A stretch of 64,000 bases of DNA from Penicillus capitatus (lineage: Eukaryota; Plantae; Chlorophyta). The DNA is taken from the NCBI GenBank assembly GCA_965649825.1, contig OZ287699.1, positions 248,001 to 312,000 on the forward strand, read 5' to 3'. The notes beneath the pieces were generated by a model, which was not told the origin of the DNA, made no database searches, and was given only the letters and a program-made list of their open reading frames with translations. Of this stretch, positions 10,156-59,249 are shown one piece after another. A program made the translations under genes and the position numbers. Every line of letters begins with the position of its first letter. Positions within the stretch are counted from its first letter, which is position 1.

Positions 10156-12945
10156 ATGGCAGACAACGCGGGGCACGATGACTACGAAGGCTTCCAATGG
10201 ATCGGCGAGGAAGCTTTCTACACGTTTCCCCATCCCCTTTCGTCGACTTGCGCAAAAACGTGTTCGTGATGTTAGAACACAGAAAGACAGGCGCAGGATG
10301 ACGAAGGAGGACGCGATTTACGGAGTCTTCGCCGAAGAGGAGGAGGAGACTCGACCGAAGCGACCCCGAGACAGACGCCCACATGCCACTCGGGGCGCCG
10401 TTTCCTTCGTCTCCTCTGGGCGCGTCCAGGAAGGAGAGGTCGCGCGTGACACAGTCGAAATTACACTTCCACGATCCGCTCCCGCCGAACCCACCCCAGC
10501 CGAAACCACACCAGAGAGCGACGCCACCTCTCTGCCCACATCTTTCGGTCAGAAGTGCGCCGAAAGAGTGACAGTGGGAGTGTGTGAGAGAGAAGCGTGT
10601 GTGCGCCAGGATCCGCGACGGGGCACTGAAAAGACAGAGGGAGGAGAAGGAGAAGGAAGAGATACAGCAAGCATGGAAGGAAGCGGGACAGACCGGCTTC
10701 GCATCCTTCGAGCAGCATTCTCGCGGCATTGCCAGCAAACTCATGCAGAAGATGGGATACAAGCCAGGAGAAGGACTGGGAGCGCGCAAGCAAGGTCTTC
10801 TCGCGCTTTTTCACCGATCGTTCTCAGGAGCTGCGCAATGCGGCAGGCATGGTGGACCCACTGGTGCAGAAAATGCGTCCAAAGAGCATGGGGATGGGGT
10901 ATGGTGACTTCAAGGAGCAGGGACCGGAACTTGACCACGCTGCCGACGCAAAACCGCAGGTCCCTTCCTAGAGAGATGGAACCTTGATCCGAAAGAGTGA
11001 CCCGTTTGATGCGCAGGAAGAGCCCGAGGTCCCCGAGAAGCGGCCACGCCTGTGGAGGGCTTCCACTGCGAAAGAGAGACGCAAGAGATCGTTCCGAACA
11101 GCCGAAGAAGTGCTGCAGGAGACAGAGGAGGCGTGGAAGGCGCCTGTCCTGCCTACGATTCTGGACATGCGAGGACCCAAGGCACGCGTTCTTACAGACT
11201 TGGCCAAGTTGAATGAAGACCGTCCAGACGAGGCACGGCCAATGCCGGAGCTGCAGCACAACATGGATCTTCTGGTCGAGATGACGGAGAACGAAATCAA
11301 GAACGTCCATGCGAAGCTCAAGACGACGGAAGACATGGCGGTGCTAATGGAGAAAGAAGAACAGAGGCTGCTGGACGAGATGGAGGAGCGACAACAGGAG
11401 ATCGATCGACGCCTCGAGCTCCAGTCCCGATTCGAAACGCAGATCCGTCCCGTGGATCCCACCACACAGTACGATGCCCTTCTGCAGGCGTCGCAGGAAC
11501 TTCAGACAGCGTTCTCAGTCGATTACAAAGCTTGCAAGGTTCCGGTGCTTCTGCTGGACAAGGTGTGTCGATTGCGCCTGGAGTGCGATGCAGACGAGTG
11601 AGCCGTAGGTCCTGCCCTACTTTGAAGCCCTGTATCGGAACTGGCAGCCGTTCGAGGACGGGGAGCGGGGTCGCGAAGAGATGCGTGCCTGGAAAGGTCT
11701 GCTCTCTCTTCCCCTCGCGTCCAAGTCCTCCCTTGAGGTTATACCATCCCGATCGCCTGTTCCCTGACGTCACGTTTCTCGCAGGAGGACTGCTTCGGAT
11801 TGCTAATGGTCTGCACAATGATGCCGCCGTTGAGATCCGCCATCGTAAATATCTGGCGTCCGCGGGATCCGGAGCCGCTTCTTACTCTTCTAGACCTGTG
11901 GAGATATCTCTTCCCTCAACAGCTGATGCGATACGTTTGCGAGGCACTTGCGTTTCCGAAGCTGAAGGCTGAGGTCGAGAGATGGGAGCCACGGTCCGAC
12001 GCCCTCCCCGTGCACACATGGATCCATCCGTGGCTGATCTGGATGCCAGCAAAGCTCAGACAGCTATACCCTGCGATCTTGCACAAACTCACCGCGGCCC
12101 TCCAGGTTTCGATTTCGCCTCGTGGGGACAAAGCTCTCAGCTCGTCGCCGTGTTGTGTAGAACTGGCAGCCGTCAGACGCGAGTGCGTTGGTTCTGCTGC
12201 GGCCATGGAAGACGGTGTTCGACGAAGAGCAGTGGACGTCGCTTCTCTCCAAGGCGATCTTGCCAAGACTGGCCCATTCTCTGCAAGTAGGGCTCGCTCC
12301 TCTTGATTTTTTTCGACCGACTGTTGTGATCAGGATTACGAGGTCGATCCCTTGACGCATGACGTTTCCACGGTCGAAAACGTCGTCGCGTGGCAGGAGG
12401 TCGCGCCGGCCAAAGACCTGGCGGCGTTGCTGGATGTCTGTTTCTTTCCTAAGTGGATCAAAGTTCTGCACCATTGGTTGACACACAGTCCCAATCTGGA
12501 AGAGGTCTCCGCTTGGTACCTCAGCTGGAAGGGCGTCTTTCCACAAGTGATTCTTGATGCGCCGAAGGTGGCCAACCATCTGAGCACGGCATTGGATTGC
12601 ATGAACCGTGCAGCAGAGGGCTTGCCCATTCCCTCTCTGGAGATGCTGGTGCGCGAAGAGGAGATCGATTTCAAGAAGCAGAGCCGTACGGCCGGTGCTT
12701 CTCCCAAACGCGCCAAGGAGACGTTCACACTGAGGGACATGGTCCAGAGCTTCGCGGAGGAGAAGAACATATCGTTTGTGCCGAAGCCGAAACGGATGCA
12801 CGAGGGGTTGCAGGTCTACAGCTTTGGAGGCGTCAGTGTCGTGCTGGACATAGCACAGAACGGCATCCGGGGACAGTTTGGACAAACCTGGAAACCGTTG
12901 TCTCTGGAGCAACTCTTCTTAGAGGCACAGAGGCGGTCAAAATAA
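10156..12945 (+). CDS. TFIP11: Tuftelin-interacting protein 11 / Ntr1 (G-patch, spliceosome disassembly)
   Basis: MTKEDAIYGVFAE; G-patch GIASKLMQKMGYKPGEGLGARKQG; RPKSMGMGYGDF; PMPELQHNMDLLV; VHTWIHPWL; FFPKWIKVLHHWL; EGLQVYSFGG. Confidence 0.93.
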
Positions 12946-13415
12946 GGTTTCCCTCGTGCTCCCCTTCGAGATTGTCGAGTGCGATTTGTTGCCGAAGTTA
13001 GAGACCTTGTCCCCTGTCAACCTTCCTCTGTCAGTTGTATCTTACTCGCGTTAAAAACTTCAGTATCCATTGGATTACCTCCCAACTGGTAGATTTTAGG
13101 GACAGAATTCTTTACGCGGATACCAAGTAGCGAAAACCGTTAAATCAAACACGTCTACGCTATGTTTTAATCTAACGAAACTGCGAATCGTGAAATCGTA
13201 GTTCTCTTCTGTGTTTGTCGATGCATCCCGTCCGCAAAATCCCCTGTGACGGATTCGCCGTTGTAAAGCCAAGACATGTTTCGACGAACAATCAACCGAG
13301 TAGCCGTCTGCGGAACGAAGCCTTGAGTAACGGAGAGTTATTGGACCGCGGGAGAGTGGCCGACGGTTATCTGTCCGACTCGGAGCGTTTTGAAAGACCA
13401 AAAGAAACAACAAAC

Positions 13416-16400
13416 ATGTTTGGATTCGACAATACGGTGAGCGTATCGAACACATCCGTGAATGCTGACACGGGCGCGCATTCTCTAGTGTGTCCCTTTA
13501 ACGGAGGCCGAAGAAAGCACATTCACCAAAGAAGGTCTGAAGAAGTCGTTCGGAGACAAGGCTTGGATGCCTCGCCAAATGGAAACCTCAGAATGGAGGA
13601 ACGTGGCTAGCGTCGAGCCCCGCAATGGAGCGTCCCGACAAGTGGAGGTTAGTGAGAACCAACCGTCCACCTCATAACAACTGCGAGTTGAGCGTCTTCC
13701 TTCAGGCGTTCCGACGCAAGGACTGTGTGAAGAGTCCGAATGAAGCCAGCGTCAATCCAGCTTCAAAGGTGATCCACTCTTTACAAGAGATTCATATTAG
13801 AACACCACATTCGACAGATGCGGGATCCTGTGACTGTCGCTAATACGCTTCAGTCCTATATTCCTCGTCTTAGCCGCTGTGGGCGGGCCTCAGATGTTTC
13901 TACCAAAGGATTCAATAGTAAACGAGTTATACGCGCCAAACCTTGCTTGCAGAGGGGCGCCACCCTCATCGACTGGCCCCCGGTGAACATGACTCCACCA
14001 GCATTCCGTCCAATAGAGAGTCCTCTTTGTCTAACTCCTGTTCCCGCATGCAACCAGGTATTCTGATGTTTGCCCCTTTTCTGCCGCGAGTTCTTTTCTC
14101 AGGAAAATTCCAAAGAGATCTGCGAAGTCGAGATCGAGGGACATGGTCTTCTGCAGATCTTCCGAGTAGGCAGGATGTTTGCTGGGAGGATCGTGGAGAG
14201 AACGGGTCCGTTCTCGAGGACCTTGACGATTCCACTCTACTGCGACGGTCTTCGCGACCCAGAAGATATGATGAAGAGCCTAATATACCTGCCGAGGAGC
14301 GCTCTGCGTCGTCGCATCCACGTTCTGTCCGATCGAGTTCGCGGCGTCGAGAAGTTCATCTTTGTGGGAAAGCTAGGTCTTCCGGGCGGCGGGAACGGAG
14401 AAGCCTCGTCCAGCAGCGATGCTCATGGACACCAGACTGCTACCGAAGGAAGTACCTCTCGTTGGGTGAAGAGAAGCGCTTTGACTCGCACGGACAGCTC
14501 GATCATCCGAAGAAACCTCGTAGGAAAACAATACCGTAGTCTGGAAGAAATCGTGATGGCGTTTAACGATGCAAATGATGTGCGAAAGAGGCATGGCCTG
14601 GCAAAGGTGTTGCGGAAAGTCCTCTATACATTCAATGACATGCCAGTCAGGGCAGTGACGGACGATCGTGGTGCAATAGTCCGAGAGTACCTTGCACTGT
14701 GCAGACTCGATTGGACCGACGACGAGTATCTGCTTCTCAAAGACTTCTTCGACAGCCTCCGCGACAAACTGTGCAACGACGCTCTCATCAACAGACATCT
14801 AATCGAGGCAGTGGAACATGTGCTTCAAAGCGTTGACCCCGATATCTTCGAAGATGATCCTAACTGAATTCTCCAACTCGCCCAGTTTCTGTTAAACGCG
14901 TTCGATCCTGAGAGAACGAGCTTCTCGAGAGAGATGTTTCCAGTGCAGTGCAGCGCTCTGCACGTTGTGCATCAGTGTCTGAGGATCCTCTTCGACATCG
15001 GTTCGGGCAGCTGGGATCCGAACAGACCCGATGGGCTGTATGCGAAGTTCAAGAACTGGACGCAGAGAGTGATTGATATCGCGGTGCACTATCCGGCGAA
15101 GTATCAGGCGATGTTGGTGCAACAGAGCTTGACTCTTTTGCAGTCATCCAAGAGAAACGTCCGTGATGCGAACAAAGCAAGGCGCATTGCCAACCTGGCG
15201 TACGGCACTGTGGGAGTATGTCAAGCGTTGCGAAATGCCGTCCTTCTCGACTTCGATCTGGGGAATGCGGAGTCCACGGCTAGTGCACTGACCCGAGCGA
15301 GAGAGAACCGAATCGTCAACGAAGAGCAATGGTACAAGTGCCTTCACGCCCTCGACACTGTGCGCTTCGCGGCTATTGAAGATCCGTCTGCATTTGGACA
15401 GTTTAACGAGCTCCTCTCATCCCTCGTGCTCGAGGAAGAGGGCTCCAACCAAGAAAGATGCAAGGTTCTGAGGTTCGGCGTGGTTGAGATGTTGACAAGC
15501 CTGGCCATCCACGGAAAGGACGACGTTGTTCGTGGAAAGAGCGCCGCTGCTCTGGCAGGCCTCGTGGAACCAAGAGACAGGTGGGACTGGTCTAACGACC
15601 ACGATCTCTTCTTGGAGATGGTCGACAACCTGGCAGAGCTTAGCGCCAGAGGCCGCGAGCCGGAAAAACGAATAGCACACGAAGCAATAGAGAAATTGAC
15701 GTCGAACGCGCTCAACCGGTCGTGTGAGGGAGTGCTGTGTGAGTGGCTCGGAAGGAAGACGGTCAAAGAACGGATCCAATTTGTCTCGTCTCTCCGGACA
15801 CAGACAGTCGGCAACAAGCTGTTTGCTACGGTGTGGAAGAGTCTCGGAGGCGAATTGTCGCTTGCACCAACCGAAGCCCGTTCTCCGCCAAGGAAACACC
15901 ACTGTCTGTTCTCGCCTCTTGTGGTTCGCCATTTCGTCGGGAGGAAGGATGAATTCGACAAACTCGTCGAAGCGTTCAGATCAACCACGGAGAACGAAGT
16001 TGTTGTCAAGGCAGTTGTCGGCCCCAGTGGCATAGGAAAGTCTCAGCTCGCGGCAAAGGTGTTCGAACGTCTCAAGAACACGAACAACTATGTCAACGAT
16101 TTCTGGATCTCTTCAAACTCTGCGGAGGGCCTCTCAGCTGCTTTCTTGCAGGTCGCAGAACACCTGGAACTTCCAACGGACACCGATATCGCAAAGACAG
16201 TCATACGTGTTCACGAAGAGCTTAGAAAAACGAGCTGTATCTTCGTCTTTGACGACGCCCCAGATCTCGAATCGATTACCGAATACCTTCCGCCAGCAAA
16301 TGGACATGTTATCATCACGACAAGAGACATTGGAGCAAGAGACTGGTCACGCGACACAGTTCGACTTGGACCATTCGACAAATTCGAAGCACGAGATTTG

Positions 16401-18215
16401 GCAGGGAAATTTGGAATCTGCGGTGAATCGCATGGGAAGGTTTTGGATGAATTGTTGGATACATTACCGCGATACCCGCTGGCCCTTACACAGTTCTTCT
16501 CGGTGATGGAGAACGATGAGCTGTCAAGCGCTGTCGAATGGATGATTAAAGTTCGACACTATGACCCAAAGAGAAGGGAAACCGAGGTCACGGAAAAGCT
16601 TTTAGCGAAAGAAGACAGTGGAGGCACGAGCAGAATGATTTTCGTGTTCAATTTGAGTGTACAGAGGATTTCAGGAGAACCCGGCTATCTGGGATCGCGT
16701 TCACTCGACCTTCTTGCCAAGTTAGCACTCCTCAACCCGAACGGAGTGCCAATCGAGTGGGTGTACAAGTGGCTCGGGTCCGAGGATCGACAGCAGTCAA
16801 GAACCACAACGCAAAATTCAATAAGGCTCCTCGAGCACTTTTCCCATGTGTCGTGGAATAGAGAGAAGAACCAGATCTTCATCCACGCAGAAACACAACG
16901 TCTGGCGCGATATCTTCTACCGAGCTTAGGAAAAAATGTGTTCGGCATGAAAGAGACGTGCGAGGAACACACAAACAAAAACGTCGCAGACCACATAATG
17001 GAAATAGTGCGTTCAATCGGCCACTACATTAGAGACTGGAGAATGAATCGTTCAAACAGAGATCTTTGGACCTTGCTTGCCCAAAATCTATCGGTGCTCC
17101 ACAAACACTGCGAAAATTGCATGGATATCAATGTGCAGATCGAGCTAATAAGACACATGTCAAGAGCGTACACAGAAATGTGCATGTTCGGCGAATCGCT
17201 CTTCTACACTCAAAAAGAGGTAGAGATGTGCAAACGTCTTCACGGCGGAGACCACCCAGAACTAGTCCAGTGCATCAAAAACTACTCCGCTGGACTTTCA
17301 CAGGCGGGAAGAGACAGCGAAGCTTTGCCGCTCGACAAGAGGGCTCTCGAAATGTGCGAACGCCTTCACGGAGACACGGACCACCCAGAGCTGGTTTTGT
17401 GCATAAGAAATTACGCCGCCGGACTTTCGAGGGCGGGAAGAGACAGCGAAGCTTTGCCGCTCGACAAGAGGGCTCTCGAAATGTGCGAACGTCTTCACGG
17501 AGACGCGAACCACCCGGAGCTGGTTTTGTGCTTAAAAAACTACGCCTGTGGACTCGCGAGGGCGGGAAGAGACAACGAAGGTTTGCCGCTCGACAAGAGG
17601 GCTCTCGAAATGTGCGAACGCCTTCACGGAGACACGGACCACCCGGAGATCTTTTTGTGCATAAGAAACTACGCCGCGGGACTCGCAAAGGCGAGTAGAG
17701 ACAACGAAGCTTTGCCGCTCCTCAAGAGGGCTCTCGAGATGTGTGAGCGTCTTCACTCCGACGCGGATCATTCGGACCTCGTTAATTGTATCAAAAACTT
17801 CGCCGTCGGGCTTTCACGGGTGGCTAGACATAACGAAGCCCTGCCGCTCCTCGAGAGGGCTCTCGAGATGTGCACGCGACTTTACTGCGACGCAGACCAT
17901 CCGGACCTCATCCAATGCATCAAAAGCTATGCCGCCGGACTCGCGAGGGCGGGAAGAGAAAGCGAAGCTTTACCGCTCTACAAGAAGGCCCTAGAGATAT
18001 GCAAACGCCTACACGGTGAAGCGGACCATCCGGACCTCGTTGACTGCTATGAGATATATGCCGTCGTACTCTGGAAAGCGAGAAGAATTTTTAAAGCGTC
18101 GTTATATTCGAGAAAAGCTAAGAAAATGCATAAAAGACTTAGAGCTAACAAGAAATCTGGGATCTTGTCTTATTTACCGATTCTTGGTACTTTACGCCGT
18201 ATGATGCTCGCATGA
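13416..18215 (+). CDS. NLR-like STAND protein: spliced N-terminus + endosymbiont-effector-like domain + ARM-like domain + NB-ARC + 7 TPR; one in-frame TGA at 14865-14867 (possible pseudogene allele)
   Basis: ORFs 14070-14867 and 14934-18215 share a frame and read through as DDPN*ILQLAQFLL. Walker A GPSGIGKS, Walker B CIFVFDDA, GHVIITTR, YPLALTQ, and TPR_12-like repeats are present. Upstream mini-introns (e.g. 14058-14102) extend the frame 5'. The start codon is uncertain (13221 or 13416). Confidence 0.8.
17253..18155 (+). repeat. 129-nt (43-aa) TPR coding tandem repeat x7
   Basis: Units start at 17253, 17382, 17511, 17640, 17769, 17898 and 18027; consensus HPELVxCIKNYAAGLxRAGRDxEALPLxKRALEMCERLHGDxD. 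Confidence 0.95.
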
Positions 18216-20057
18216 TTTTTCCGAGTACTAAAAAAAATATAACCGGGATGCACTACTTAGATTCTTAATTATCTTTGAATCTACTATGAGGTGTCTTTAT
18301 TATTGCCTTAAAGCTTTGCGTTAACGTTTCTTTGTGACGGTAACCTATTCGAGCACTATTGAAGGAATGTATTTCTTGAAGGAGATGCGGCAGATCATCT
18401 GAAAAGATGATAGGTCGCTGATCTGCCGGATCGACATGAATGAATAAGGAGATCATTCATTCAAGATTTCTGGTTGACATGATGTATAGATGTCAAAACA
18501 GTCACTACAAAGATAACTCCTCGTTTGGTGAGAATCTTGTTTGTGCTGGCCGAGCTTGCTTCAATAACTAATCGTCGCTGACTTAAAAGGACCTTCTCTC
18601 TATAAGAAACACCCCGAAAAGGAAGTTTGTTGTGTTCTCGTGGCGTTTTCACGACAGCATCTATCTTTTGTGAGTTAAAGCACTTTTCCGCAAGAGTTCT
18701 TTTCGATGTTGTCGTGGACCCGAAGCTGAAGTGGGAAGAAGGGAGGAAGAAGGGCACGTCACATCATCATAAGAAGCACGACGACATCATAACGTCATGC
18801 TGCGTAGTATAAAAAGGGGTTCTGAGACACAACTCTCGTGTTTTGTAATAAAACCCGCTTTGTTGCTTGCGTTTACTTTTAGACCGTATCAAAATGTTTA
18901 TCTGACGTAGTGGAATCGCCTTTTTCCAGTATGTTCTGTCTGCTCAACTAGCATCTGCAAACTAGCTTGTTTCGCGTCTACTGTGGCACACTGTGCAGTG
19001 TATCGTTGATGATGTTCTTGGTGAGCGTGGAAGAGACCGCCGTTGGGAGAATCACTGTTTTTAATTTACTTCGCCTTTTCTGTCGAGCAACTTTCACTGG
19101 CCTCGCGCAAGGAGTATTACGTATACTTTGAGTTATGCATTTCAAGTAGTGCCGCTTCTGTTAGTAAAGCTCGTATCGCCAATAGAAAAGAACTCTCGGC
19201 ACACAATGCTTTGTGATTCGTCCCATTTCCTGGTTCATGCCAAGCACTTGCGAAACTGTTTTTGACTTTGTGGCTTTCTAAACACAATCTCGTCATCGGC
19301 CAAATGAAGTGTCTTGTGTCTTGTGTTCGTTCAGGAAGGGTTCGAATCTTGATGTCAACCATTGAGTGTAAGAAACTCGGTGCTTAGTCATGTTCATCGA
19401 TTTGTGAACCAAATGGAGCTCTGTTTGAATTCGACAATCAATGTAAACCGACAATAGGATTGTAATCCAGGTTCATGACTTAAAAGACTGTTAAGAAAAA
19501 CCCATACGTCTCTAGAAGCTTCGGACAAAACCTATTTACCTTCTGTATTTCTCAACAAACCTTGCTTCTTGTCAAGATATTATTAATGCAATTGACAGAT
19601 CTAAGGCTTTGCCGGAGTGAAAGACCTGAACAAGGGAAATCAGGCGTAGTTCTTCAATTTTTATCAGTCTAAGTTCGTCCATTGTGCTGCAAGGAAAGGA
19701 AAATGATGGATATTGACGAGCGAAGGCATCTGTAAAAACAACGACGATCGTTAATTGTTCATTATTCGCGTCCTACCGTTGTTTCGTTTTTGCTGCGCGC
19801 GTTTGTTCGGCGACCATGGTTTCCGTCGCACGACGGACATTGACTACACTACTGCACCTATCGTGCAGCCGGTGACCGTTCTAATCATCAAAGGAATCGA
19901 ACACCGTGTTCGACGCAAAGTCATCGAGCATCCGCTTAATCGCGCTTAGAACGGCATAGCTGTGGGTGGTGGTATTCTTGTGGTGAACATGTTTTCCCCT
20001 CGCAATTCAACCAAATCTCTATCTTCGAGACGAATGAATGGATGAAATATGCATGTG

Positions 20058-20864
20058 ATGGGTGACTATCATGTCCATCTTTTTGTCGGAGGAAATCGCC
20101 TCGTGTCGGTGACAATGCAGCGGAAGACTTAGAGCTTTACAGAGCAATGGTATCTTGGGGTTCGAATACGCAGATTTATACGCTAGATGTTGCTGCAATA
20201 TTCGCTCGGAAAGTTGAAGCAGTGCGCGTTGGCGGTTTGCTGTTCGTATGCAGAAACGTACAGAACGCAGTTACAAATCTGTGATCGTGCGCGTCCGTTT
20301 TTAATGTCCATTTTTTCCAGATAATATTTGTCGCCGAGATTTCCGCGGCGATGGGACCTGTCTTGTTGTGAATGGGGCCAAGCGTGGAAGGGACACTCAG
20401 GGTCGTGTCAAAGGGGGCCTGGGACCGTGAGGAGTCCTTGTTCCCTGGCTCTGGACGAGGGATGACTCATCTACCCAGAGGGTCACATCATTTGGACCGG
20501 ATAAGAGGGAAAAACCGTGGGATTTAGAGACCTTTTTGTACGCTTTGGATTTAAGTTGTGTGTGTGAACTTTCACTCTGGCCGACGACGAAACACGACAC
20601 GTTTCGCGTGCGATCGTTCCATACCCACCTCTGTACCAAAATCCACCGTATTTGGCGGCGCTCGAGTTTTTCAGGAACGCAGAACGTGGGGATACTGACG
20701 TGACCGAGCCCTTTCGGCAGGACTCGACCCAAGGGGAAGAACCGTTGGAGGGCACGGCTGAGGCAGGACCATCGAACGCAGGAGTTGAAGCAGAAGGACA
20801 CCGTGGTGATATCTCGGGAAGCGATACGTCACCAGACCAGGAGCCACGAAGGCGACAATATTGA
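20058..20864 (+). pseudogene. Spliced-looking hypothetical gene or pseudogene
   Basis: Exons join in frame across GT-AG mini-introns (MGDYHVHLF...LYRAM|MLLQYSLG...TQLQI|YNICRRDFRGDG...GGLGP). The last segment (TLADDETRHV...PRRRQY*) needs an unexplained frame change. Confidence 0.3.
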
Positions 20865-22222
20865 TCGTAAGTGATTCTTCAGAACAATGTGATTGGACAG
20901 TGGTGAGATAGAAAAATCTAGAAGTGGACATCATCAATATTACCGACTTTTCTTGTAATCATTCGACTTTGGTGACTGACGGCGCGATTCTTAATGGAGT
21001 CACAACAACAGATAAGTCATCCGACTCTCAGAGTCAGAGGAAACCACCTCTGAGAAGTCGTGAACCCCTTACGAGCGCCCCTTGGAAGACTAAACCCCCG
21101 GAAACGAGGCAGATCTGATGTGACATTGACCCTTTTTCCAGAATACACTGTCATGCATAATGAATAAGAGCCAGTGGGCATCGCTATAATGGCTAAACCT
21201 AACTCTCGGTTCTGGCTTTACATCCATCGGAGCTGATGTATAGATTCAATGTGATGTCGGATATCTGTGGGAAAACATAGCGAAATAGTTACTTTAGGGT
21301 TTTCTTTTCTTGCATCGACAGCTTTGCTGCCTGTCCAATCCAGTGAAATGATAAACAGTCGAGCCGCGATTAAAGGAATTTGCAACAGGCTATGTTATTT
21401 TCCCTGTAGCGGTTAACCTTGGCCGACGTGGCGCAAATGCTGAACAATGTGATGGAAACGCTGGTTCGATATGGCAAAGCCAAACGAGGCATCCTGATGC
21501 TGTCTGTGACGTTCGTTGCGCAAGAGGCTTATCATGCATGACGTTGGCATGAGAGAGGACTTACGTCATTCTGAGTATATACGCGGAACTGTTCTGTTGT
21601 ATCCGTCTAAGTATTTAATTGTACATTGCTGTCGGAGTTTCCCAGAGCGACTCGCTACCCGGTCCGGACTCGGCTGTATGACCGACGTTCAGACTGTCCG
21701 CAAACATCACTCACATCCATCCCGATCATGCAAAGAAACTAACTGTGAAGACTGCTTGCCGGCCGCCTCCTCCTTCACTTCACCCCGGACATTACTGACA
21801 ATAACACGGATTCGGCTCTCGCTCCATATCGTTCATCCGTTTTTTTCCTCCAATTGATTTTTCATCCCCCTTTTAAAAAGATCGGGAGAGCATAACATGC
21901 CTGGATCAGTCATTCATTGTAAAACTACATCAGAGGGCCCATGTGCGGCCAAGATCACGCCAGTGAGATGCGATTGTTTCCGCGAAGTCTGAAAGTACCT
22001 TTGGTGCGAGAAGGCACATGCGATAGTTAACGGGTCATCCAGTTCTCTGATGAGGAGTCTTCGAGCTTCGGAAAGGCAGGGGCATTCCAGAAGTGGATGG
22101 TTGGGGTTTTTTGATTCAGCACCGTAGATGCAGCGAGAGTCCCTGGTCGCGAGACCGAATCTGTGTAGATACTGTTTGACGGGAAATGGTTCGCTGCAAA
22201 CTTGCTCAGGCGTCCATCCGTT

Positions 22223-23216: not shown

Positions 23217-23990
<774 letters not shown>

Positions 23991-53915: not shown

Positions 53916-56351
53916 TCAAATCTGGGACTCCGTGATATGCGACGGCGTTAGGGTGGTGGTGTAAGAGGTCACGGGGGTTTCGATCGATGTGTCACCGCGC
54001 TGATCCGTCGTCCCCGGTTCCACCGTCTGTTGCCGTCTTCTGTAGACTAAAACGAATATCGTGCAGGAACCCACGACCACGACGAATGCGATGCTCGTAA
54101 TTGCGATCGCGAGCGCACTCGAGATACCCATGTCATTGACGAGAGGATCCACATCCTCAGCCATTTCCTCCCCTGTCTCCGAATCCTCACTCAGCTCGTT
54201 GCTGGAATCGAGCCCGAGGCAGTCGGGACAGCATTTGATTTCGACGTCTGGCCGCGGTGGGCCAAAGGGACACAGAATCTCATCGTCTACCAAGTCCTTT
54301 GCAGAACTCACCGTTCGTGCTTTGGCCACAGAAGACTCGACATTCACACAGGCATCCAGAGGAGGTACGGCGAAGTAACCATTGGGCTGATCGACTGGGT
54401 TCAGGGCCTCACCACCACAACTTCTCTCCGAATCGTATTCGCAGATGAACGTCAGTTTGTTATCGCACTGTACGTCATCGAGATTGGCCGAAGGTCCACG
54501 GGCGTCCATACAGACACAGTCTTGGACACCTTGATAGCTGTTTGGCTGACCGATGCCCCAGAAAGGCGAATGATTATCGAGATCTGGAGTCGAGCCTTCC
54601 TGCCACGTAAAGGTATCGAAGTTGCGACGAGCCCCGACCCATGTGCCATCCTCCGAAGCCATATTCGAAACGAACTGCAGTTCCTCCCCGCTACCGATGC
54701 TAACGAGTGTCCCCCCGTCCTCTTCGCATCGATTCTTGGCGTCATCCCACTTAACAAGATCTGAAAAACGTTTGTAGTAGGAACGGCCGTTCGTAAAGCA
54801 GGGTGGCGTATCCTTGTCCCTCGAAGAATCGGATTCCACCGGAAAGGGGTCAATGCAGGTGGCTTCGTTTGCAAAGACATTTCTCAGCACTTGTAACTGA
54901 CAAGTATCGTTGATGACAGGTTCACACCGCCCCGTCCGTCCCAGCAGCTCGTCTAGAATATCATCCAGTTCAAATTGAGATTCATCCAATTCAGTAAAGC
55001 GTACATCGTGTCCTGCAACGCCGAGAAAGACCCCTTTGATCGTTCCAGATCCTTGAGAAAAAACAGGTTTCGCCACCGTGATGATTTCACCCAGTCCACT
55101 GTCATCCATATACGGCTCCGTCCATACCGGAGTGCCAGATGTACGGCGAGCCGTCAGAAAGAGGTAAAAGCTTCGCATCGCCGTCAAAGGGTCATCGTCA
55201 TCTTCAATAAAAGACCATGAACCATCGTTGTTACATGCGATTTGTCGAGGAATCGAGTCATCTGCATCTTTGCCCAGAGAGAATGTAAATATAGATGCCC
55301 GACGCGACGTCCTGTTCTCCAGTCTTCTCTGGTATTCTGCGATGCGGGCGTTCATGACAGATGCCTTGATTCCATTTTCTCCCAGAGTCCCTGAAGTATC
55401 TCTACCATCCGTTAAGAAGATGATCACTTTTTCACAGCCGGAACACGTTTTGCGCTCAACGCCACAGGCGTCGGTTAACAGATCAAAGGCCAGTTTAAAA
55501 GCGGGCTCAAAACTCGTCCCGCCGTCCGGATTATGTCCTGCAAGAATTTCTTTGATCTCGGCTTTGTTCTGCTCAATTCCTTGGGCCAATGGATTTTGCT
55601 GCCATAGTCGACGAGCCGAGTCCGAAAAGGTAATGATATTAAAATAGTCGCTCGTGCTGAGCGTATCGACGAGAGCAGAGACGGCAGCTACGGTCATCGT
55701 CCATTTGGAAACGCCTCCTCCGTTTGAAGGATTATCCATCGAGCCCGATTCATCGATCACAAAAACTATATCTTTGGGTCCAGCGCTAGCGGCGATATAC
55801 CATGGCCGTGTCCTGGGATCGTAGCTTCGACAGTCTCCCAGCAACGGCTCTCCGTTCACTGCACGCGTTCGTCCAGAAGCAGGCCATCGTCTGAAATGCC
55901 CGTCTGTTGTACCGAGGTATGTCCAGGCGAGGTCCGGAGGGAAGTCACGAAACAGTGTATCCAGATCTCGGTAAGTACAGATGGATTCCTTAAGCGAAGG
56001 ACTCATCGCTGAAGGATCGGTATCTGGCGGCAGACGCACGATGGTTTGGTTGTAATCAATTAATTGCCCGGAGCAAGACTCTCCACAAAGCTCATCGAGT
56101 CCGCCAAGGACTGTCTCGCACTGTGCCCCCGGGAAGTCGTAGGAACAGGAATGCAGCGAGCATTTGCAGTCCAGTACAGCAGTGCTACGTCTCTGGTAGG
56201 ACAGACTCGCTCTCGCTGCCAGACGACTGACAATTTCTTCCTTCTCTCGAATGACTTCAAGAGCCGAATCTGAGAGACACGTGACAGAAATGATGAAGGT
56301 CAGTGTGCAGGAACACAGGAAAAGGCGACGCGGAGCACTGGACTCGAACAT
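53916..56351 (-). CDS. alpha2delta/CACHD1-like VWA-Cache protein with C-type lectin domain and C-terminal TM (intronless)
   Basis: Signal peptide; WTYLGTTDGHFRRWP...YDPRTRPWYIAASAGPKDIVFVIDESGSM (MIDAS intact); GTPVWTEPYMD; CTLD (WDDAKNRCEEDGGTLVSI...WVG...QPN...DCV...DDVQC...FICE); TM ISSALAIAITSIAFVVVVGSCTIFVLVY-RRR. Confidence 0.9.
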   Translation of the reverse strand: MFESSAPRRLFLCSCTLTFIISVTCLSDSALEVIREKEEIVSRLAARASLSYQRRSTAVLDCKCSLHSCSYDFPGAQCETVLGGLDELCGESCSGQLIDYNQTIVRLPPDTDPSAMSPSLKESICTYRDLDTLFRDFPPDLAWTYLGTTDGHFRRWPASGRTRAVNGEPLLGDCRSYDPRTRPWYIAASAGPKDIVFVIDESGSMDNPSNGGGVSKWTMTVAAVSALVDTLSTSDYFNIITFSDSARRLWQQNPLAQGIEQNKAEIKEILAGHNPDGGTSFEPAFKLAFDLLTDACGVERKTCSGCEKVIIFLTDGRDTSGTLGENGIKASVMNARIAEYQRRLENRTSRRASIFTFSLGKDADDSIPRQIACNNDGSWSFIEDDDDPLTAMRSFYLFLTARRTSGTPVWTEPYMDDSGLGEIITVAKPVFSQGSGTIKGVFLGVAGHDVRFTELDESQFELDDILDELLGRTGRCEPVINDTCQLQVLRNVFANEATCIDPFPVESDSSRDKDTPPCFTNGRSYYKRFSDLVKWDDAKNRCEEDGGTLVSIGSGEELQFVSNMASEDGTWVGARRNFDTFTWQEGSTPDLDNHSPFWGIGQPNSYQGVQDCVCMDARGPSANLDDVQCDNKLTFICEYDSERSCGGEALNPVDQPNGYFAVPPLDACVNVESSVAKARTVSSAKDLVDDEILCPFGPPRPDVEIKCCPDCLGLDSSNELSEDSETGEEMAEDVDPLVNDMGISSALAIAITSIAFVVVVGSCTIFVLVYRRRQQTVEPGTTDQRGDTSIETPVTSYTTTLTPSHITESQI

Positions 56352-56682
56352 ATCAAGACAAGAGATGGGAGACGTTTGAACAGTAGAACGAGCGTAACTG
56401 GTTTGGCGCTGAAGCTAACCGTCCAGTGACCACGTTCGCGTCGTAGCCTCTGTCCGCGGATATTTCCGGACGGCATAAAACTAACGGTTCATAAGTCTGT
56501 TCAATAGATAGGAGGATGGCGAATGCGTTGCGACGTGGGCCGTCACAATCAGTCCTCAGTCAAGCACGAAGCCGACAAAAGTCTATCCTGTCACATACGG
56601 CAGCAGATGCCACATTGCTCGACACAGCGACGACTGACAGCTTTAGGATGCAATCCACCACACACAGCAACGGAGGCTTCTC

Positions 56683-58905
56683 TTATGGATCTCCAGAATC
56701 CTCCTCCTCTAGAGACTTTCCTTTGCAGCGTTGACAACATAGACTGCGCAGATCTCGTGGTCCGTTATCAAGCGAACACCATAACTGCGATGAAGAGGCA
56801 ACAGATACGCTGGACATCGTGCTGGCATCGAACAATGCTTCTTCCTCTCGCTGGCATGCATTCAAGAGAGGAATCGTAAAGTAACCGCGTTTGGGAATCG
56901 GAATCGTTTTGGAACAGTGGTCTTGCGATTGGTAGGCGCAGATGTAAGAGAGCTCTCTCCGACAGGGAACGGCTTCGAGATTTCCGACGGCTCCTCGATT
57001 GTCGATCCGTACACAGGCGTCGCCGACACCGATGGCCTTGTCTTGTATATCGAACTCAACGGGATCACGTTTCGGAGCCGCCGACCAACGAAAGCGCTGA
57101 TTCTTGCTCGTCCTTCGGCCGCCGATCCACGTACCGTCGGCCGATGCCATACCGGCCAAAAACTCGAGATCCTCTGCCGAGTGTCCAGACACCAGCACGC
57201 CGCTATCGTTCCGACAACTGCTTGCCGCTTCGTTCCACGTCACACGTGTGCGGAACATCTTGTAGTATATCCCCTCGCGTTTCAGACAGGCCGGCGTCTC
57301 CTCTTCCTTCGCCTTCCGCACCCTGTGCCTCTTGCCTTTTCTCGATCCCGAACGCCTGTCGCTCTTTGACGGGATAGGCGGCGGCGTGTCCACGCAGATC
57401 GATCCCTGGGCAAAAACATTGCGATACACCTGTAGCTGACAGGCATTGACGTCGATGATGTCGTGTTTGCGCGATCGTTTCACGAGCTCTTCTTCGATGT
57501 CCACTCGCGTCAAGTTCTCCACCATCAAGTCCCGAAGCCGGACGTCGTGGCTCACAACGCCGAGCAGCAATGGATTCTGTCCATTGTTCGGAAGAAAATG
57601 AAATGATTTGGCCACCGTCGTTATTCTGCCCGCTCCGTACGGATCCATTCTGAAATTTGTCCAGATGGGAAACGAAGCGGCAAAGGTCGAGGCCATAAAA
57701 ACGTTATAGGCATTCAGTATCTGAAAGGCGTCGTCGTCGGGACCAACTGAAAACCAAGCGCCGCCATTTGCGCAGGAAATTTGTTTCAGCAATGCATCGT
57801 CGACATCGTCACCGATCGAGAAGGTGAAGATTCTGGCACGGACGCCCGAAGCATCTTCCAACGCATCTTGCAGCTGCTCCACCTTGCGGAGAAATTCTTC
57901 GTGCTCTATCGGTCGTCCATTGCGACCGCGATGATTTGAACTGCCCGTCACAACGACGAGGATTTTCTGTCCACGATGCGACGCATCCCGCTTGCCCCCT
58001 TTCCCCCGATTCGCCTCCAGCAATAATTTGAATCCCAGTTTGATCCCTTCCCGTACATTACTCTGCCCGTGAGGATGCAGACTTTGAATAGAGCTCTTGA
58101 GGAGATACAGATGACGTGCGGTTCCCGGAAAAAGTCCTTGTCCCGTTCCCCGACGCCGTGCCTTATCCGAGTAGGCAACCAGATTCACGCGGTCCATCGA
58201 AGAGAGCGTATCCAGCAACGACTGAACGGCTTCGCTGATGGACGCCAGTCGACTCCGGCGACTTTTCACGCTCCATGGCTTCGCCATATCTTTCGACGTG
58301 TCCACAACGAAGATCACATCTTTGGGCCCGACACTGGCGCCGACATAATCGGCCGTGTTCCGTGGGTCCGTGTCTGGACAGGACGCTCGCTCTTCTTCTG
58401 TGAGGGACAATCGCATCGGTCGGCTTGGATAGATGCGACTGTGACCGTCCTTGGTGGAAATGCGTGTCGTGGTGTTCGCTTCGGGGTCCAGTTGCATCAG
58501 TACCGGTTCCAGATTTCGGTAGAGACACACGCTTTCTTTCATTTCGTGTCCCACAGCATCGAGGTCGATTCCGGACGGTGTGCTCACAAACGTAATGGCA
58601 CCGCCATTTTGAGTCGCCGCACATTTTGCCTTGCCACAGACGGCTAGGGAATCACGGTAAACGAGGTCGCAGGCGTTTTGGCTGAATTCCATGTCACAGA
58701 TGTGCACAGAGCAGTCGCAGGGCTGAGAATCTCTCCCTCGCCGTTTAAATAGAGACGCTGCTTCTTCGGCGAGTTCATAGACCAGTCGTTCCTTTGCTTC
58801 TATGATCTGCAATGCGGATTTTGGAAATCGTGTCACAGCCAAACAACACGAATGGAGAAGGAGGATGGCCACGAGAACAACCATGCGTAGATAGAGAGCA
58901 ACCAT
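56683..58905 (-). CDS. Tandem paralog: secreted VWA-Cache/C-type lectin protein, degenerate MIDAS, no TM (intronless)
   Basis: Signal MVALYLRMVVLVAILLLHSCCLA; GPKDVIFVVDTSKD; FPIWTNFRMD; CTLD WNEAASSCRNDSGVLVS...WIG...CVRID...VPCRRELSYIC; ends CCQRCKGKSLEEEDSGDP*. Confidence 0.88.
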   Translation of the reverse strand: MVALYLRMVVLVAILLLHSCCLAVTRFPKSALQIIEAKERLVYELAEEAASLFKRRGRDSQPCDCSVHICDMEFSQNACDLVYRDSLAVCGKAKCAATQNGGAITFVSTPSGIDLDAVGHEMKESVCLYRNLEPVLMQLDPEANTTTRISTKDGHSRIYPSRPMRLSLTEEERASCPDTDPRNTADYVGASVGPKDVIFVVDTSKDMAKPWSVKSRRSRLASISEAVQSLLDTLSSMDRVNLVAYSDKARRRGTGQGLFPGTARHLYLLKSSIQSLHPHGQSNVREGIKLGFKLLLEANRGKGGKRDASHRGQKILVVVTGSSNHRGRNGRPIEHEEFLRKVEQLQDALEDASGVRARIFTFSIGDDVDDALLKQISCANGGAWFSVGPDDDAFQILNAYNVFMASTFAASFPIWTNFRMDPYGAGRITTVAKSFHFLPNNGQNPLLLGVVSHDVRLRDLMVENLTRVDIEEELVKRSRKHDIIDVNACQLQVYRNVFAQGSICVDTPPPIPSKSDRRSGSRKGKRHRVRKAKEEETPACLKREGIYYKMFRTRVTWNEAASSCRNDSGVLVSGHSAEDLEFLAGMASADGTWIGGRRTSKNQRFRWSAAPKRDPVEFDIQDKAIGVGDACVRIDNRGAVGNLEAVPCRRELSYICAYQSQDHCSKTIPIPKRGYFTIPLLNACQREEEALFDASTMSSVSVASSSQLWCSLDNGPRDLRSLCCQRCKGKSLEEEDSGDP

Positions 58906-59249
58906 ATTTCGACCTCGGAATGTTGCTAGAAAAGATAAACGGGCGAACTGCTCGGCGACAGATAGGCGACGCGTGCATGGAGAGGTTCGAAAGTGGGTCG
59001 AGCAATAATTTATGTCCATTCAACTGAACGCAGCCATCCAACGGGTAACGCATTGTTTGCCATTGTCTATCACGTACGAACCGTCGGCGAATGCACCGAT
59101 CGTCTGGCCTCGGAGATTCCGCACGCCTCATCGTCAGATCCTCCGGAACAGGCGTGTGCATCCATAGACCGCGACGCGGCACGGCGGTGACGTCAAAGTC
59201 CGCGACGCTGACGAGGATTAACGGCTGGTCCGACGAACATATCTGAAGG

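Follow-up and report, generated by a model that had tools for sequence, protein, structure and literature searches.

A gene family shared by a siphonous-green-alga-type genome and Bacteroidota, with an undescribed LxGG-ending head module

Transfer of NOD-like receptor (NLR)-type genes from an endosymbiont to its host has so far been described in early-diverging fungi. Such genes have passed from Mycoavidus to Mortierellomycota, and a parallel case has been reported in Gigasporaceae (PMC11291939). A helical domain termed NLR_Helical is known from Mortierellomycetes, Pezizomycotina and Mycoavidus (PMC9815663). The gene analysed here occupies positions 13818-18215 of a 64,000-nucleotide stretch of Penicillus capitatus contig OZ287699.1 (hereafter the window, by which the whole stretch is meant). 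In the explanation that best fits the data, and which as a whole appears fairly likely, this gene is one copy of a multi-copy nuclear gene family of a siphonous-green-alga-type eukaryote. It would have moved whole into the algal nucleus from a coral- or alga-associated Cytophagales bacterium, gained a 5' exon and an intron there, and then been duplicated and kept up by purifying selection as a switch protein.

The closest precedent, by analogy, is the transfer from Mycoavidus to Mortierellomycota. In both cases a STAND/NLR-type gene is common to the host and its putative intracellular bacterial associates, the host has multiple copies, and a long helical region precedes the NTPase, this last likeness (to NLR_Helical, PMC9815663) being drawn from the layout. 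The two cases differ in their partners, here a siphonous green-alga-type host and Cytophagales bacteria, and in their architectures: NB-ARC-TPR and NACHT-HEAT in the window and bacterial family versus NACHT-PPR-WD40 in the fungal one. Moreover, the window family carries an extra, undescribed head module ending in Leu-x-Gly-Gly (LxGG). The P-loop, Walker B motif, NB-ARC match and TPR_10/TPR_12 array are shared with the NB-ARC-TPR STAND NTPases of bacteria, fungi and some green algae, whereas the ~600 residues before the NTPase are specific to the window family. As in fusion proteins of ubiquitin and ubiquitin-like proteins, a conserved Leu-x-Gly-Gly lies in a flexible tail at a domain boundary and is followed by a different polypeptide. 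However, four meander strands, two helices and two strands are predicted in place of the beta-grasp, and processing after the motif would be putative here. Polymorphic secreted effector and toxin families likewise have many paralogs per bacterial genome, with an export signal, head and linker placed before unrelated cargos, but here the head is undescribed and the cargos are STAND NTPases and repeat proteins, with no recognised toxin domains.

Relatives of the gene and its origin

The gene comprises an 80-aa leader exon, a 45-nt intron, the head module, a linker, a helical region of ~470 aa, an NB-ARC domain and TPRs:

13818-14057, plus strand: exon 1, 80 codons (MRDPVTVAN...PACNQ), a basic, Ser/Thr/Pro-rich leader
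14058-14102, plus strand: tiny spliceosomal intron, 45 nt (GTATTC...CTCAG), with an in-frame TGA inside, from paralog comparison
14103-14393, plus strand: head module, ~95-97 aa, ending LGLPGGG, from the family alignment and an AlphaFold2 (AF2) model
14379-14390, plus strand: L-P-G-G motif (family consensus G-L-x-G-G), in a flexible tail
14394-14531, plus strand: low-complexity, Ser-rich linker (NGEASSSSDAHGHQTA...)
14532-15932, plus strand: helical region, ~470 aa, preceding the NTPase domain and starting YRSLEEIVMAFND
14865-14867, plus strand: premature in-frame TGA, codon 255 counted from 14103
15948-16334, plus strand: NB-ARC NTPase core (P-loop GPSGIGKS, 16020-16043; Walker B IFVFDDA, 16239-16259)
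17178-18080, plus strand: TPR array of TPR_12/TPR_10 units (Pfam), consensus ALEMCERLHGDxDHPxLV...
18213-18215, plus strand: terminal stop of the long reading frame

A full HMMER scan of 1.84 billion protein representatives, with the product of 14103-14864 as query, gave 39 relatives at E<=1e-3, of which 18 reached E<=1e-10 and 6 reached E<=1e-30, well beyond what chance would produce. P0023 (1.7e-7), P0024 (6e-6) and P0025 (1e-5) matched over the module only. Word-indexed homolog searches were far less sensitive, with one hit (P0001) and seven hits. All 39 relatives come from algal-type contigs, from Bryopsis (GMH37964.1) or from metagenome-assembled genomes (MAGs) of Bacteroidota, and the scan found the family in no alga or plant other than the window-type contigs and Bryopsis. 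No homolog from a plant or another green alga, the observation which an earlier sequence-only reading had set against its own proposal of horizontal acquisition, was present among them. Plasmids held no relatives of a bacterial-type module query, nor did IMG/VR and the JGI metagenomes of an algal-type one.

The close paralogs (P0001-P0010 and P0021) are 48-73% identical and are located on ENA contigs of 0.1-1.8 Mb; all those whose sample was looked up belong to ERZ25074695. At the N-terminus of the distant relatives (26-37% identical) stands either a lipoprotein-type signal (…LLQSC…) or else a leader conserved among them (MKTNTSKE..FYTQGQ..hydrophobic..SP.), followed by a spacer, the module, a GEGEASGSGE-type linker and varied C-termini. 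Those with names are 'Bacteroidota bacterium' MAG entries (MEN0016479, MEN0016529, MEN0016374, MEO1300999, MEO1218952 and MEM7382803). The protein of Bryopsis sp. KO-2023 (GMH37964.1, P0012) is encoded on a 7-Mb contig, lacks an export signal and was treated as the product of an algal nuclear gene.

The bacterial module consensus, GAFSRxxVLPVVC…QRQIHVL…VVYVGELGLKGGG, fits the recurrent Bacteroidota head that had been suggested from the letters of the window, and the recurrence of this head in front of differing cargos is supported by at least 11 loci, all in MAG P01_B01_bin.45 (JBCCGO01). These were found by a scan of one genome per GTDB species with patterns specific to one subfamily, for which absence elsewhere means little; Ca. 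Amoebophilus asiaticus and Cardinium are not among the sources of the named hits. In JBCCGO01 the members are open over 800-2200 codons without interruption, with the leader and module in front, and their loci adjoin genes for DnaK, EF-P, DnaJ/GrpE, TyrRS, CysRS, EF-G and LysRS. In the MAG proteins a Sec or lipoprotein signal and a spacer of ~60-130 residues precede the module, and the Pfam matches of the cargos are NACHT+HEAT, NB-ARC+TPR, DUF294+TPR or none.

The nearest relatives of the JBCCGO01 CysRS place this MAG in Cytophagales. Identity is 71% to a Roseivirga sp.-labelled MAG, 68% to a Cytophagales MAG, 64-65% to Ca. Amoebophilus sp. 36-38, A. asiaticus Aasi_0619 and another Amoebophilus MAG, and 59-60% to free-living Cyclobacteriaceae. 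It is possible, on these CysRS comparisons, that JBCCGO01 belongs to an Amoebophilus-like lineage. Published 16S work on the bryopsidalean alga Ostreobium reports that Amoebophilaceae belong to its core associates and are putatively intracellular (PMC10223477, PMC10497448). Another bacterial member, P0043, recurs in four Tara metagenome scaffolds, where it adjoins LigA, ClpB and an Hc1-type gene. The last is a gene for a chlamydial-type histone-like Hc1 (PF07432), seen at L013 1853-2032 on a Tara scaffold with a family member.

Homology with bacterial proteins is not confined to the head. Bacterial P0017 is collinear with window residues 9-938, that is, over module, helical region and NB-ARC (27% identity, E 1.6e-76). 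Bryopsis P0012 and bacterial P0011-P0019 align over module and helical region, and P0023 over NB-ARC and TPR. The sequence-only reading had proposed horizontal acquisition from two sources, an Amoebophilus-type one for the head and a Mycoavidus-type one for the helical region. The collinearity of P0017 supports the acquisition, and the two sources reduce to one because homology spans the whole gene. The HMMER scan, whose query took in the first ~115 helical residues, gave no fungal, Mycoavidus, Mortierella or Burkholderiales hit at E<=1e-3; over those residues the detectable relatives of the helical region appear to be the same Bacteroidota and algal proteins only. Probably, then, the gene was transferred whole, from the module onward, from a bacterial associate into the alga.

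The genomic setting is nuclear: the flanking genes are Rad51-like, GCFC, polyubiquitin, MDH and EF1G. Passage from bacterium to alga is favoured by the far greater number of architectures and copies in bacteria. In a midpoint-rooted neighbour-joining tree, Bryopsis P0012 groups with bacterial proteins bearing a lipoprotein signal (87% bootstrap). Its gene is spliced and lies among starch synthase, IBR and D123 genes, with a GC content of 51.7% against 45.7% in the flanks. A further observation on this gene (L019 10001-15933 of BSYQ01000005.1; module-NACHT-HEAT) is that its span exceeds the coding length by ~470 nt, which implies introns. Since each algal architecture has a bacterial counterpart (NB-ARC-TPR in the window, NACHT-HEAT in Bryopsis), at least two transfers are suggested.

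Several points weigh against this account. In the same tree the window-type clade is monophyletic and sister to the bacterial sequences and is not nested among them, so that the direction of transfer for this clade is not proven; it would be the same as for Bryopsis. Gene GC equals flank GC at the window locus, which thus carries no compositional signal. The window has 51.7% GC, near the 52.4% reported for Ostreobium and unlike the Bryopsis locus. Intracellular bacteria also acquire host genes. The Roseivirga sp.-labelled MAG (71%) is closer than Amoebophilus (65%) to the JBCCGO01 CysRS. Finally, several paralogs have lesions of their own: L001 is frameshifted by a 1-bp deletion, L018 has lost its ATG, and L017 and L022 are broken. 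Such turnover is usual for NLR-type families.

Some of these points would suit the reverse history, in which bryopsidalean algae were the source of the family and their intracellular Cytophagales associates acquired it on more than one occasion, export signals being added later. The absence of nesting of the window-type clade and the similar GC on both sides are compatible with it, as is the reputation of Amoebophilus-type symbionts for eukaryote-like repeat proteins, to which a passage of PMC10223477 refers (citing Schmitz-Esser 2010). Nevertheless, this history seems unlikely: the diversity of architectures and the copy number are much larger in bacteria, P0012 nests among bacterial sequences and is anomalous in GC within its host, the HMMER search found the family in no other algae or plants, and in the algal genes a 5' exon of host type meets the rest of the gene where the homology starts.

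Gene structure and the state of the window copy

The residues quoted by the sequence-only reading are accurate and all lie in frame 0, first the module, then the linker and the helical stretch. Positions 14103-14393 translate on the plus strand as ENSKEICEVEIEGHGLLQIFRVGRMFAGRIVERTGPFSRTLTIPLYCDGLRDPEDMMKSLIYLPRSALRRRIHVLSDRVRGVEKFIFVGKLGLPGGG, with ENSKEIC from 14103, GPFSR at 14205-14219, RRRIHVL at 14307-14327 and FIFVGKLGLPGGG at 14355-14393. The module had also been taken for the N-terminal end of the protein, and this was not borne out: in the predicted gene model position 14103 is exactly a splice acceptor, preceded by the 45-nt intron and the 80-codon exon. Invariant boundaries (AG/GT and CTCAG/G in six paralogs) enclose stops, and the lengths (44, 44, 45, 45, 49 and 49 nt) change by other than multiples of three, which identifies 14058-14102 as a tiny intron. 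A candidate 47-nt GT..AG intron was read from the sequence at 12287-12333, in the neighbouring GCFC/TFIP11-like gene upstream, and makes tiny introns plausible in this genome.

Once the intron is taken out, exon 2 follows in phase on an exon 1 of 80-81 codons in four paralogs. The exon 1 reading frame is open from a conserved ATG to the conserved AG/GT donor in the window, L001 and L023; in L018 the exon has equal length, with GTG instead of ATG. It begins MWDPVSVAN... in the paralogs and MRDPVTVAN... in the window. The ratio of nonsynonymous to synonymous substitution rates (dN/dS) for exon 1 is 0.39-0.73 between paralog pairs. A first comparison with L022, on a 2x contig, had suggested a non-coding exon, and better paralog pairs overturned this. 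As judged from these comparisons, exon 1 appears to be the coding 5' exon of the gene, and L023 is a fully intact gene under the intron model, with 1779 codons. Another conserved ATG, at 14048, was considered as the start and rejected: the window has it in a different frame, and the other paralogs have it immediately ahead of the intron donor, in a frame that does not match once the intron is gone. The exon 1 leader has no counterpart among the bacterial relatives, and its junction sits a few codons upstream of the start of detectable homology to bacterial proteins. In all paralogs the 80-aa leader is strongly basic (~11 Arg/Lys vs 4 Asp/Glu) and Ser/Thr/Pro-rich, a composition that resembles an organellar targeting peptide or a disordered tail.

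The TGA at 14865-14867 divides one frame into open reading frames (ORFs) at 14070-14867 and 14934-18215, the latter of 1093 aa, for whose product a look-up returned no record. The helical residues quoted in the sequence-only reading stop two codons short of this TGA, which went unmentioned there. At the same codon L018 has TGT (Cys), P0003 and P0004 also have Cys, and L001 has TCT (Ser). In the comparison of the window with L018, dN/dS is 0.27 overall (module 0.32, helical region 0.19, NB-ARC 0.36, TPR 0.25); this value indicates that the family is maintained as protein-coding and that the lesion in the window is recent or an error. The window copy is probably a young pseudogene, a truncated allele or an assembly error. 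The idea of a domesticated receptor would draw on purifying selection among the paralogs; the window copy has a premature stop.

A quite different reading, that the locus reflects contamination or a chimeric assembly, or that the gene is read through or encodes a selenoprotein and is not broken, is highly improbable. A UGA aligned with Cys in paralogs is a classic selenocysteine signature. However, no selenocysteine insertion sequence (SECIS) was found within 13000-21000 at E<=1, which led to the rejection of a selenocysteine, and Ser in L001 indicates that no redox site is involved. One chimera does exist in the family: P0006 is an assembly chimera at a 5x contig end. The window gene, in contrast, sits between intron-bearing eukaryotic genes, carries a spliceosomal intron of its own which, like the host-type exon, is conserved in six paralogs, and has its paralogs on the long contigs described above. 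As for P0006 itself (L021 1-3817, ENA ERZ25074695 ctg340236_5x_l), its algal-type module and linker continue in frame into a Bacteroidota-like protein of the beta-lactamase family; the fusion lies at a contig end, and the rest of that contig has bacterial genes. P0006 was examined as a partner effector and discarded as most likely chimeric.

Downstream of the head, the gene is a STAND NTPase of the NB-ARC clade by its P-loop, Walker B motif and C-terminal superstructure-forming repeats. The NB-ARC domain matches Pfam PF00931 (E 1.2e-7, 31.7 bits vs a cut-off of 23.5), and the repeats match TPR_12 (4e-38) and TPR_10 (8e-34), with six stretches each. No leucine-rich repeat (LRR) family was present among the 23 Pfam hits; the repeats being TPRs, the protein is not a canonical NLR (NBS-LRR or NACHT-LRR). 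No PADLOC defence family was matched. The helical region has no Pfam hit, and helices are predicted, with low confidence, over its first part. Both P0010 (algal type) and P0023 (bacterial) have the module and linker joined directly to NB-ARC without the ~470-aa helical region, which would therefore be dispensable or repeatedly lost.

The head module and its GLxGG tail

The first 265 aa of the frame have no match in Pfam, NCBIfam or PDB sequences, and the head module taken by itself has no Pfam or NCBIfam hit. In an alignment of 35 sequences the invariant or near-invariant positions are the Gly before F-S-R, Pro, Cys, Leu, His-Val, Gly and the terminal G-L-x-G-G. For the Leu and both Gly, conservation is at least 90% among algal and bacterial members, whose identity is otherwise 25-30%. 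Wherever an aligned sequence still has the C-terminal end of its module, GG is present, except in the first of two module copies in P0011 and in the truncated P0009. Conservation in the paralogs, on which the sequence-only reading had staked its proposal, was thus found. In bacterial P0011 the modules are in tandem (residues 68-141 and 294-382), and the divergent first copy lacks the GG tail.

A single-sequence AF2 model of 14103-14864 was uninformative (pLDDT 42.8). With an alignment of 23 sequences the module was modelled at pLDDT 84.5 and pTM 0.72, with a predicted topology of four meander beta-strands, two helices and two strands; flexibility is predicted for the GLPGGG tail, pLDDT falling below 50 from residue 95. 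Foldseek gave nothing convincing for this model against PDB (best E 0.55, TM<=0.35) or BFVD (best E 0.11). A ubiquitin-like beta-grasp fold was rejected on the differing AF2 topology and the lack of any Foldseek hit at E<0.1 in these two databases. Ubiquitin homology was likewise rejected: hhalign against ubiquitin encoded in the window gave a probability of 0.4%. The control was one repeat of the polyubiquitin gene at 23217-23963 (minus strand), which has three exact ubiquitin repeats and ends RGGQEA. The ubiquitin-like GG motif that had been read from the sequence is present as the conserved LxGG tail, on a fold that is not ubiquitin-like. As modelled, the head module is an undescribed domain whose likeness to ubiquitin is limited to the tail motif.

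LxGG could be a cleavage site for deubiquitinase (DUB)-type proteases, as had been proposed, or for Ulp-type ones. In the bacterium, cleavage would free the cargo from its export anchor in the host cytosol; in the alga, it would free the mature helical-NB-ARC-TPR protein from leader and module. GLxGG is among the most conserved segments of the family despite lying in a predicted flexible tail, is always at the boundary with a low-complexity linker and variable cargo, and is kept under purifying selection in every algal paralog that covers the region. Yet a Gly-rich hinge after the last strand would likewise be conserved, and the absence of a ubiquitin-like fold leaves cleavage of this type improbable. 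Nor does P0043, in which the module stands alone and ends exactly in GGG, represent a mature product: the ending is due to a GAA-to-TAA nonsense change in a decayed gene. At this locus (L014 2032-2900; also L013, L015 and L016) the TAA directly follows GGG, the linker continues in frame, the leader lies upstream in another frame, and the identical decayed copy is present in four Tara samples. A double-glycine leader, of the kind processed by C39-peptidase ABC exporters, was also considered and rejected on account of the Sec or lipoprotein signal and the spacer before the module in bacterial members.

Alternatively, the module could be a homotypic adaptor or oligomerisation head, like the death-fold or effector-associated domains, that couples STAND sensors to partner proteins bearing the same head, with GG as a structural hinge only. 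NLR N-terminal domains are usually signalling domains. Within single bacterial genomes, moreover, the head occurs both on STAND NTPases (NACHT-HEAT, NB-ARC-TPR) and on non-NTPase proteins, a distribution typical of adaptor domains. This possibility is real, if doubtful: export signals precede the head in all bacterial members, which fits secretion better than a cytoplasmic complex, and no algal partner with the head on a different cargo was found, the sole candidate being the chimeric P0006.

Proposed function and significance

In the preferred account, that of a transferred and maintained STAND gene, the protein may act as a nucleotide-dependent switch in which the TPRs would sense and the NB-ARC domain would oligomerise, with the module and helical region as the output or adaptor end. 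At the module boundary, the conserved flexible GLxGG tail could serve recognition or processing. A more far-reaching and distinctly less probable scheme would make the head a portable release device of Amoebophilus-like intracellular bacteria: the signal or anchor would retain the exported cargo until a host cysteine protease cut it at GLxGG and so freed it in the algal cytosol. Siphonous algae would have captured such effectors at least twice and kept the head for maturation or activation of the STAND protein, giving a symbiont-derived system of immunity or symbiosis control built on an undescribed fold.

Elsewhere in the window, two tandem single-exon genes (53916-59019, minus strand) encode VWA, PDC/Cache-like and C-type lectin domains. 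The first of them has a C-terminal transmembrane segment, and the layout recalls calcium-channel alpha2delta-like proteins.

The head module is new and confidently modelled, and has neither a Pfam family nor a structural neighbour in PDB or BFVD. Coral-associated bacteria carry it on exported giant proteins that form a large and undescribed family, for which the invariant LxGG tail offers a simple handle on processing. If the transfer is confirmed, Ostreobium- and Bryopsis-type algae would be linked genetically to the Amoebophilaceae-like bacteria that 16S surveys have placed inside them, and the parallel between siphonous algae and early-diverging fungi would suggest a recurring route by which hosts obtain intracellular sensors.

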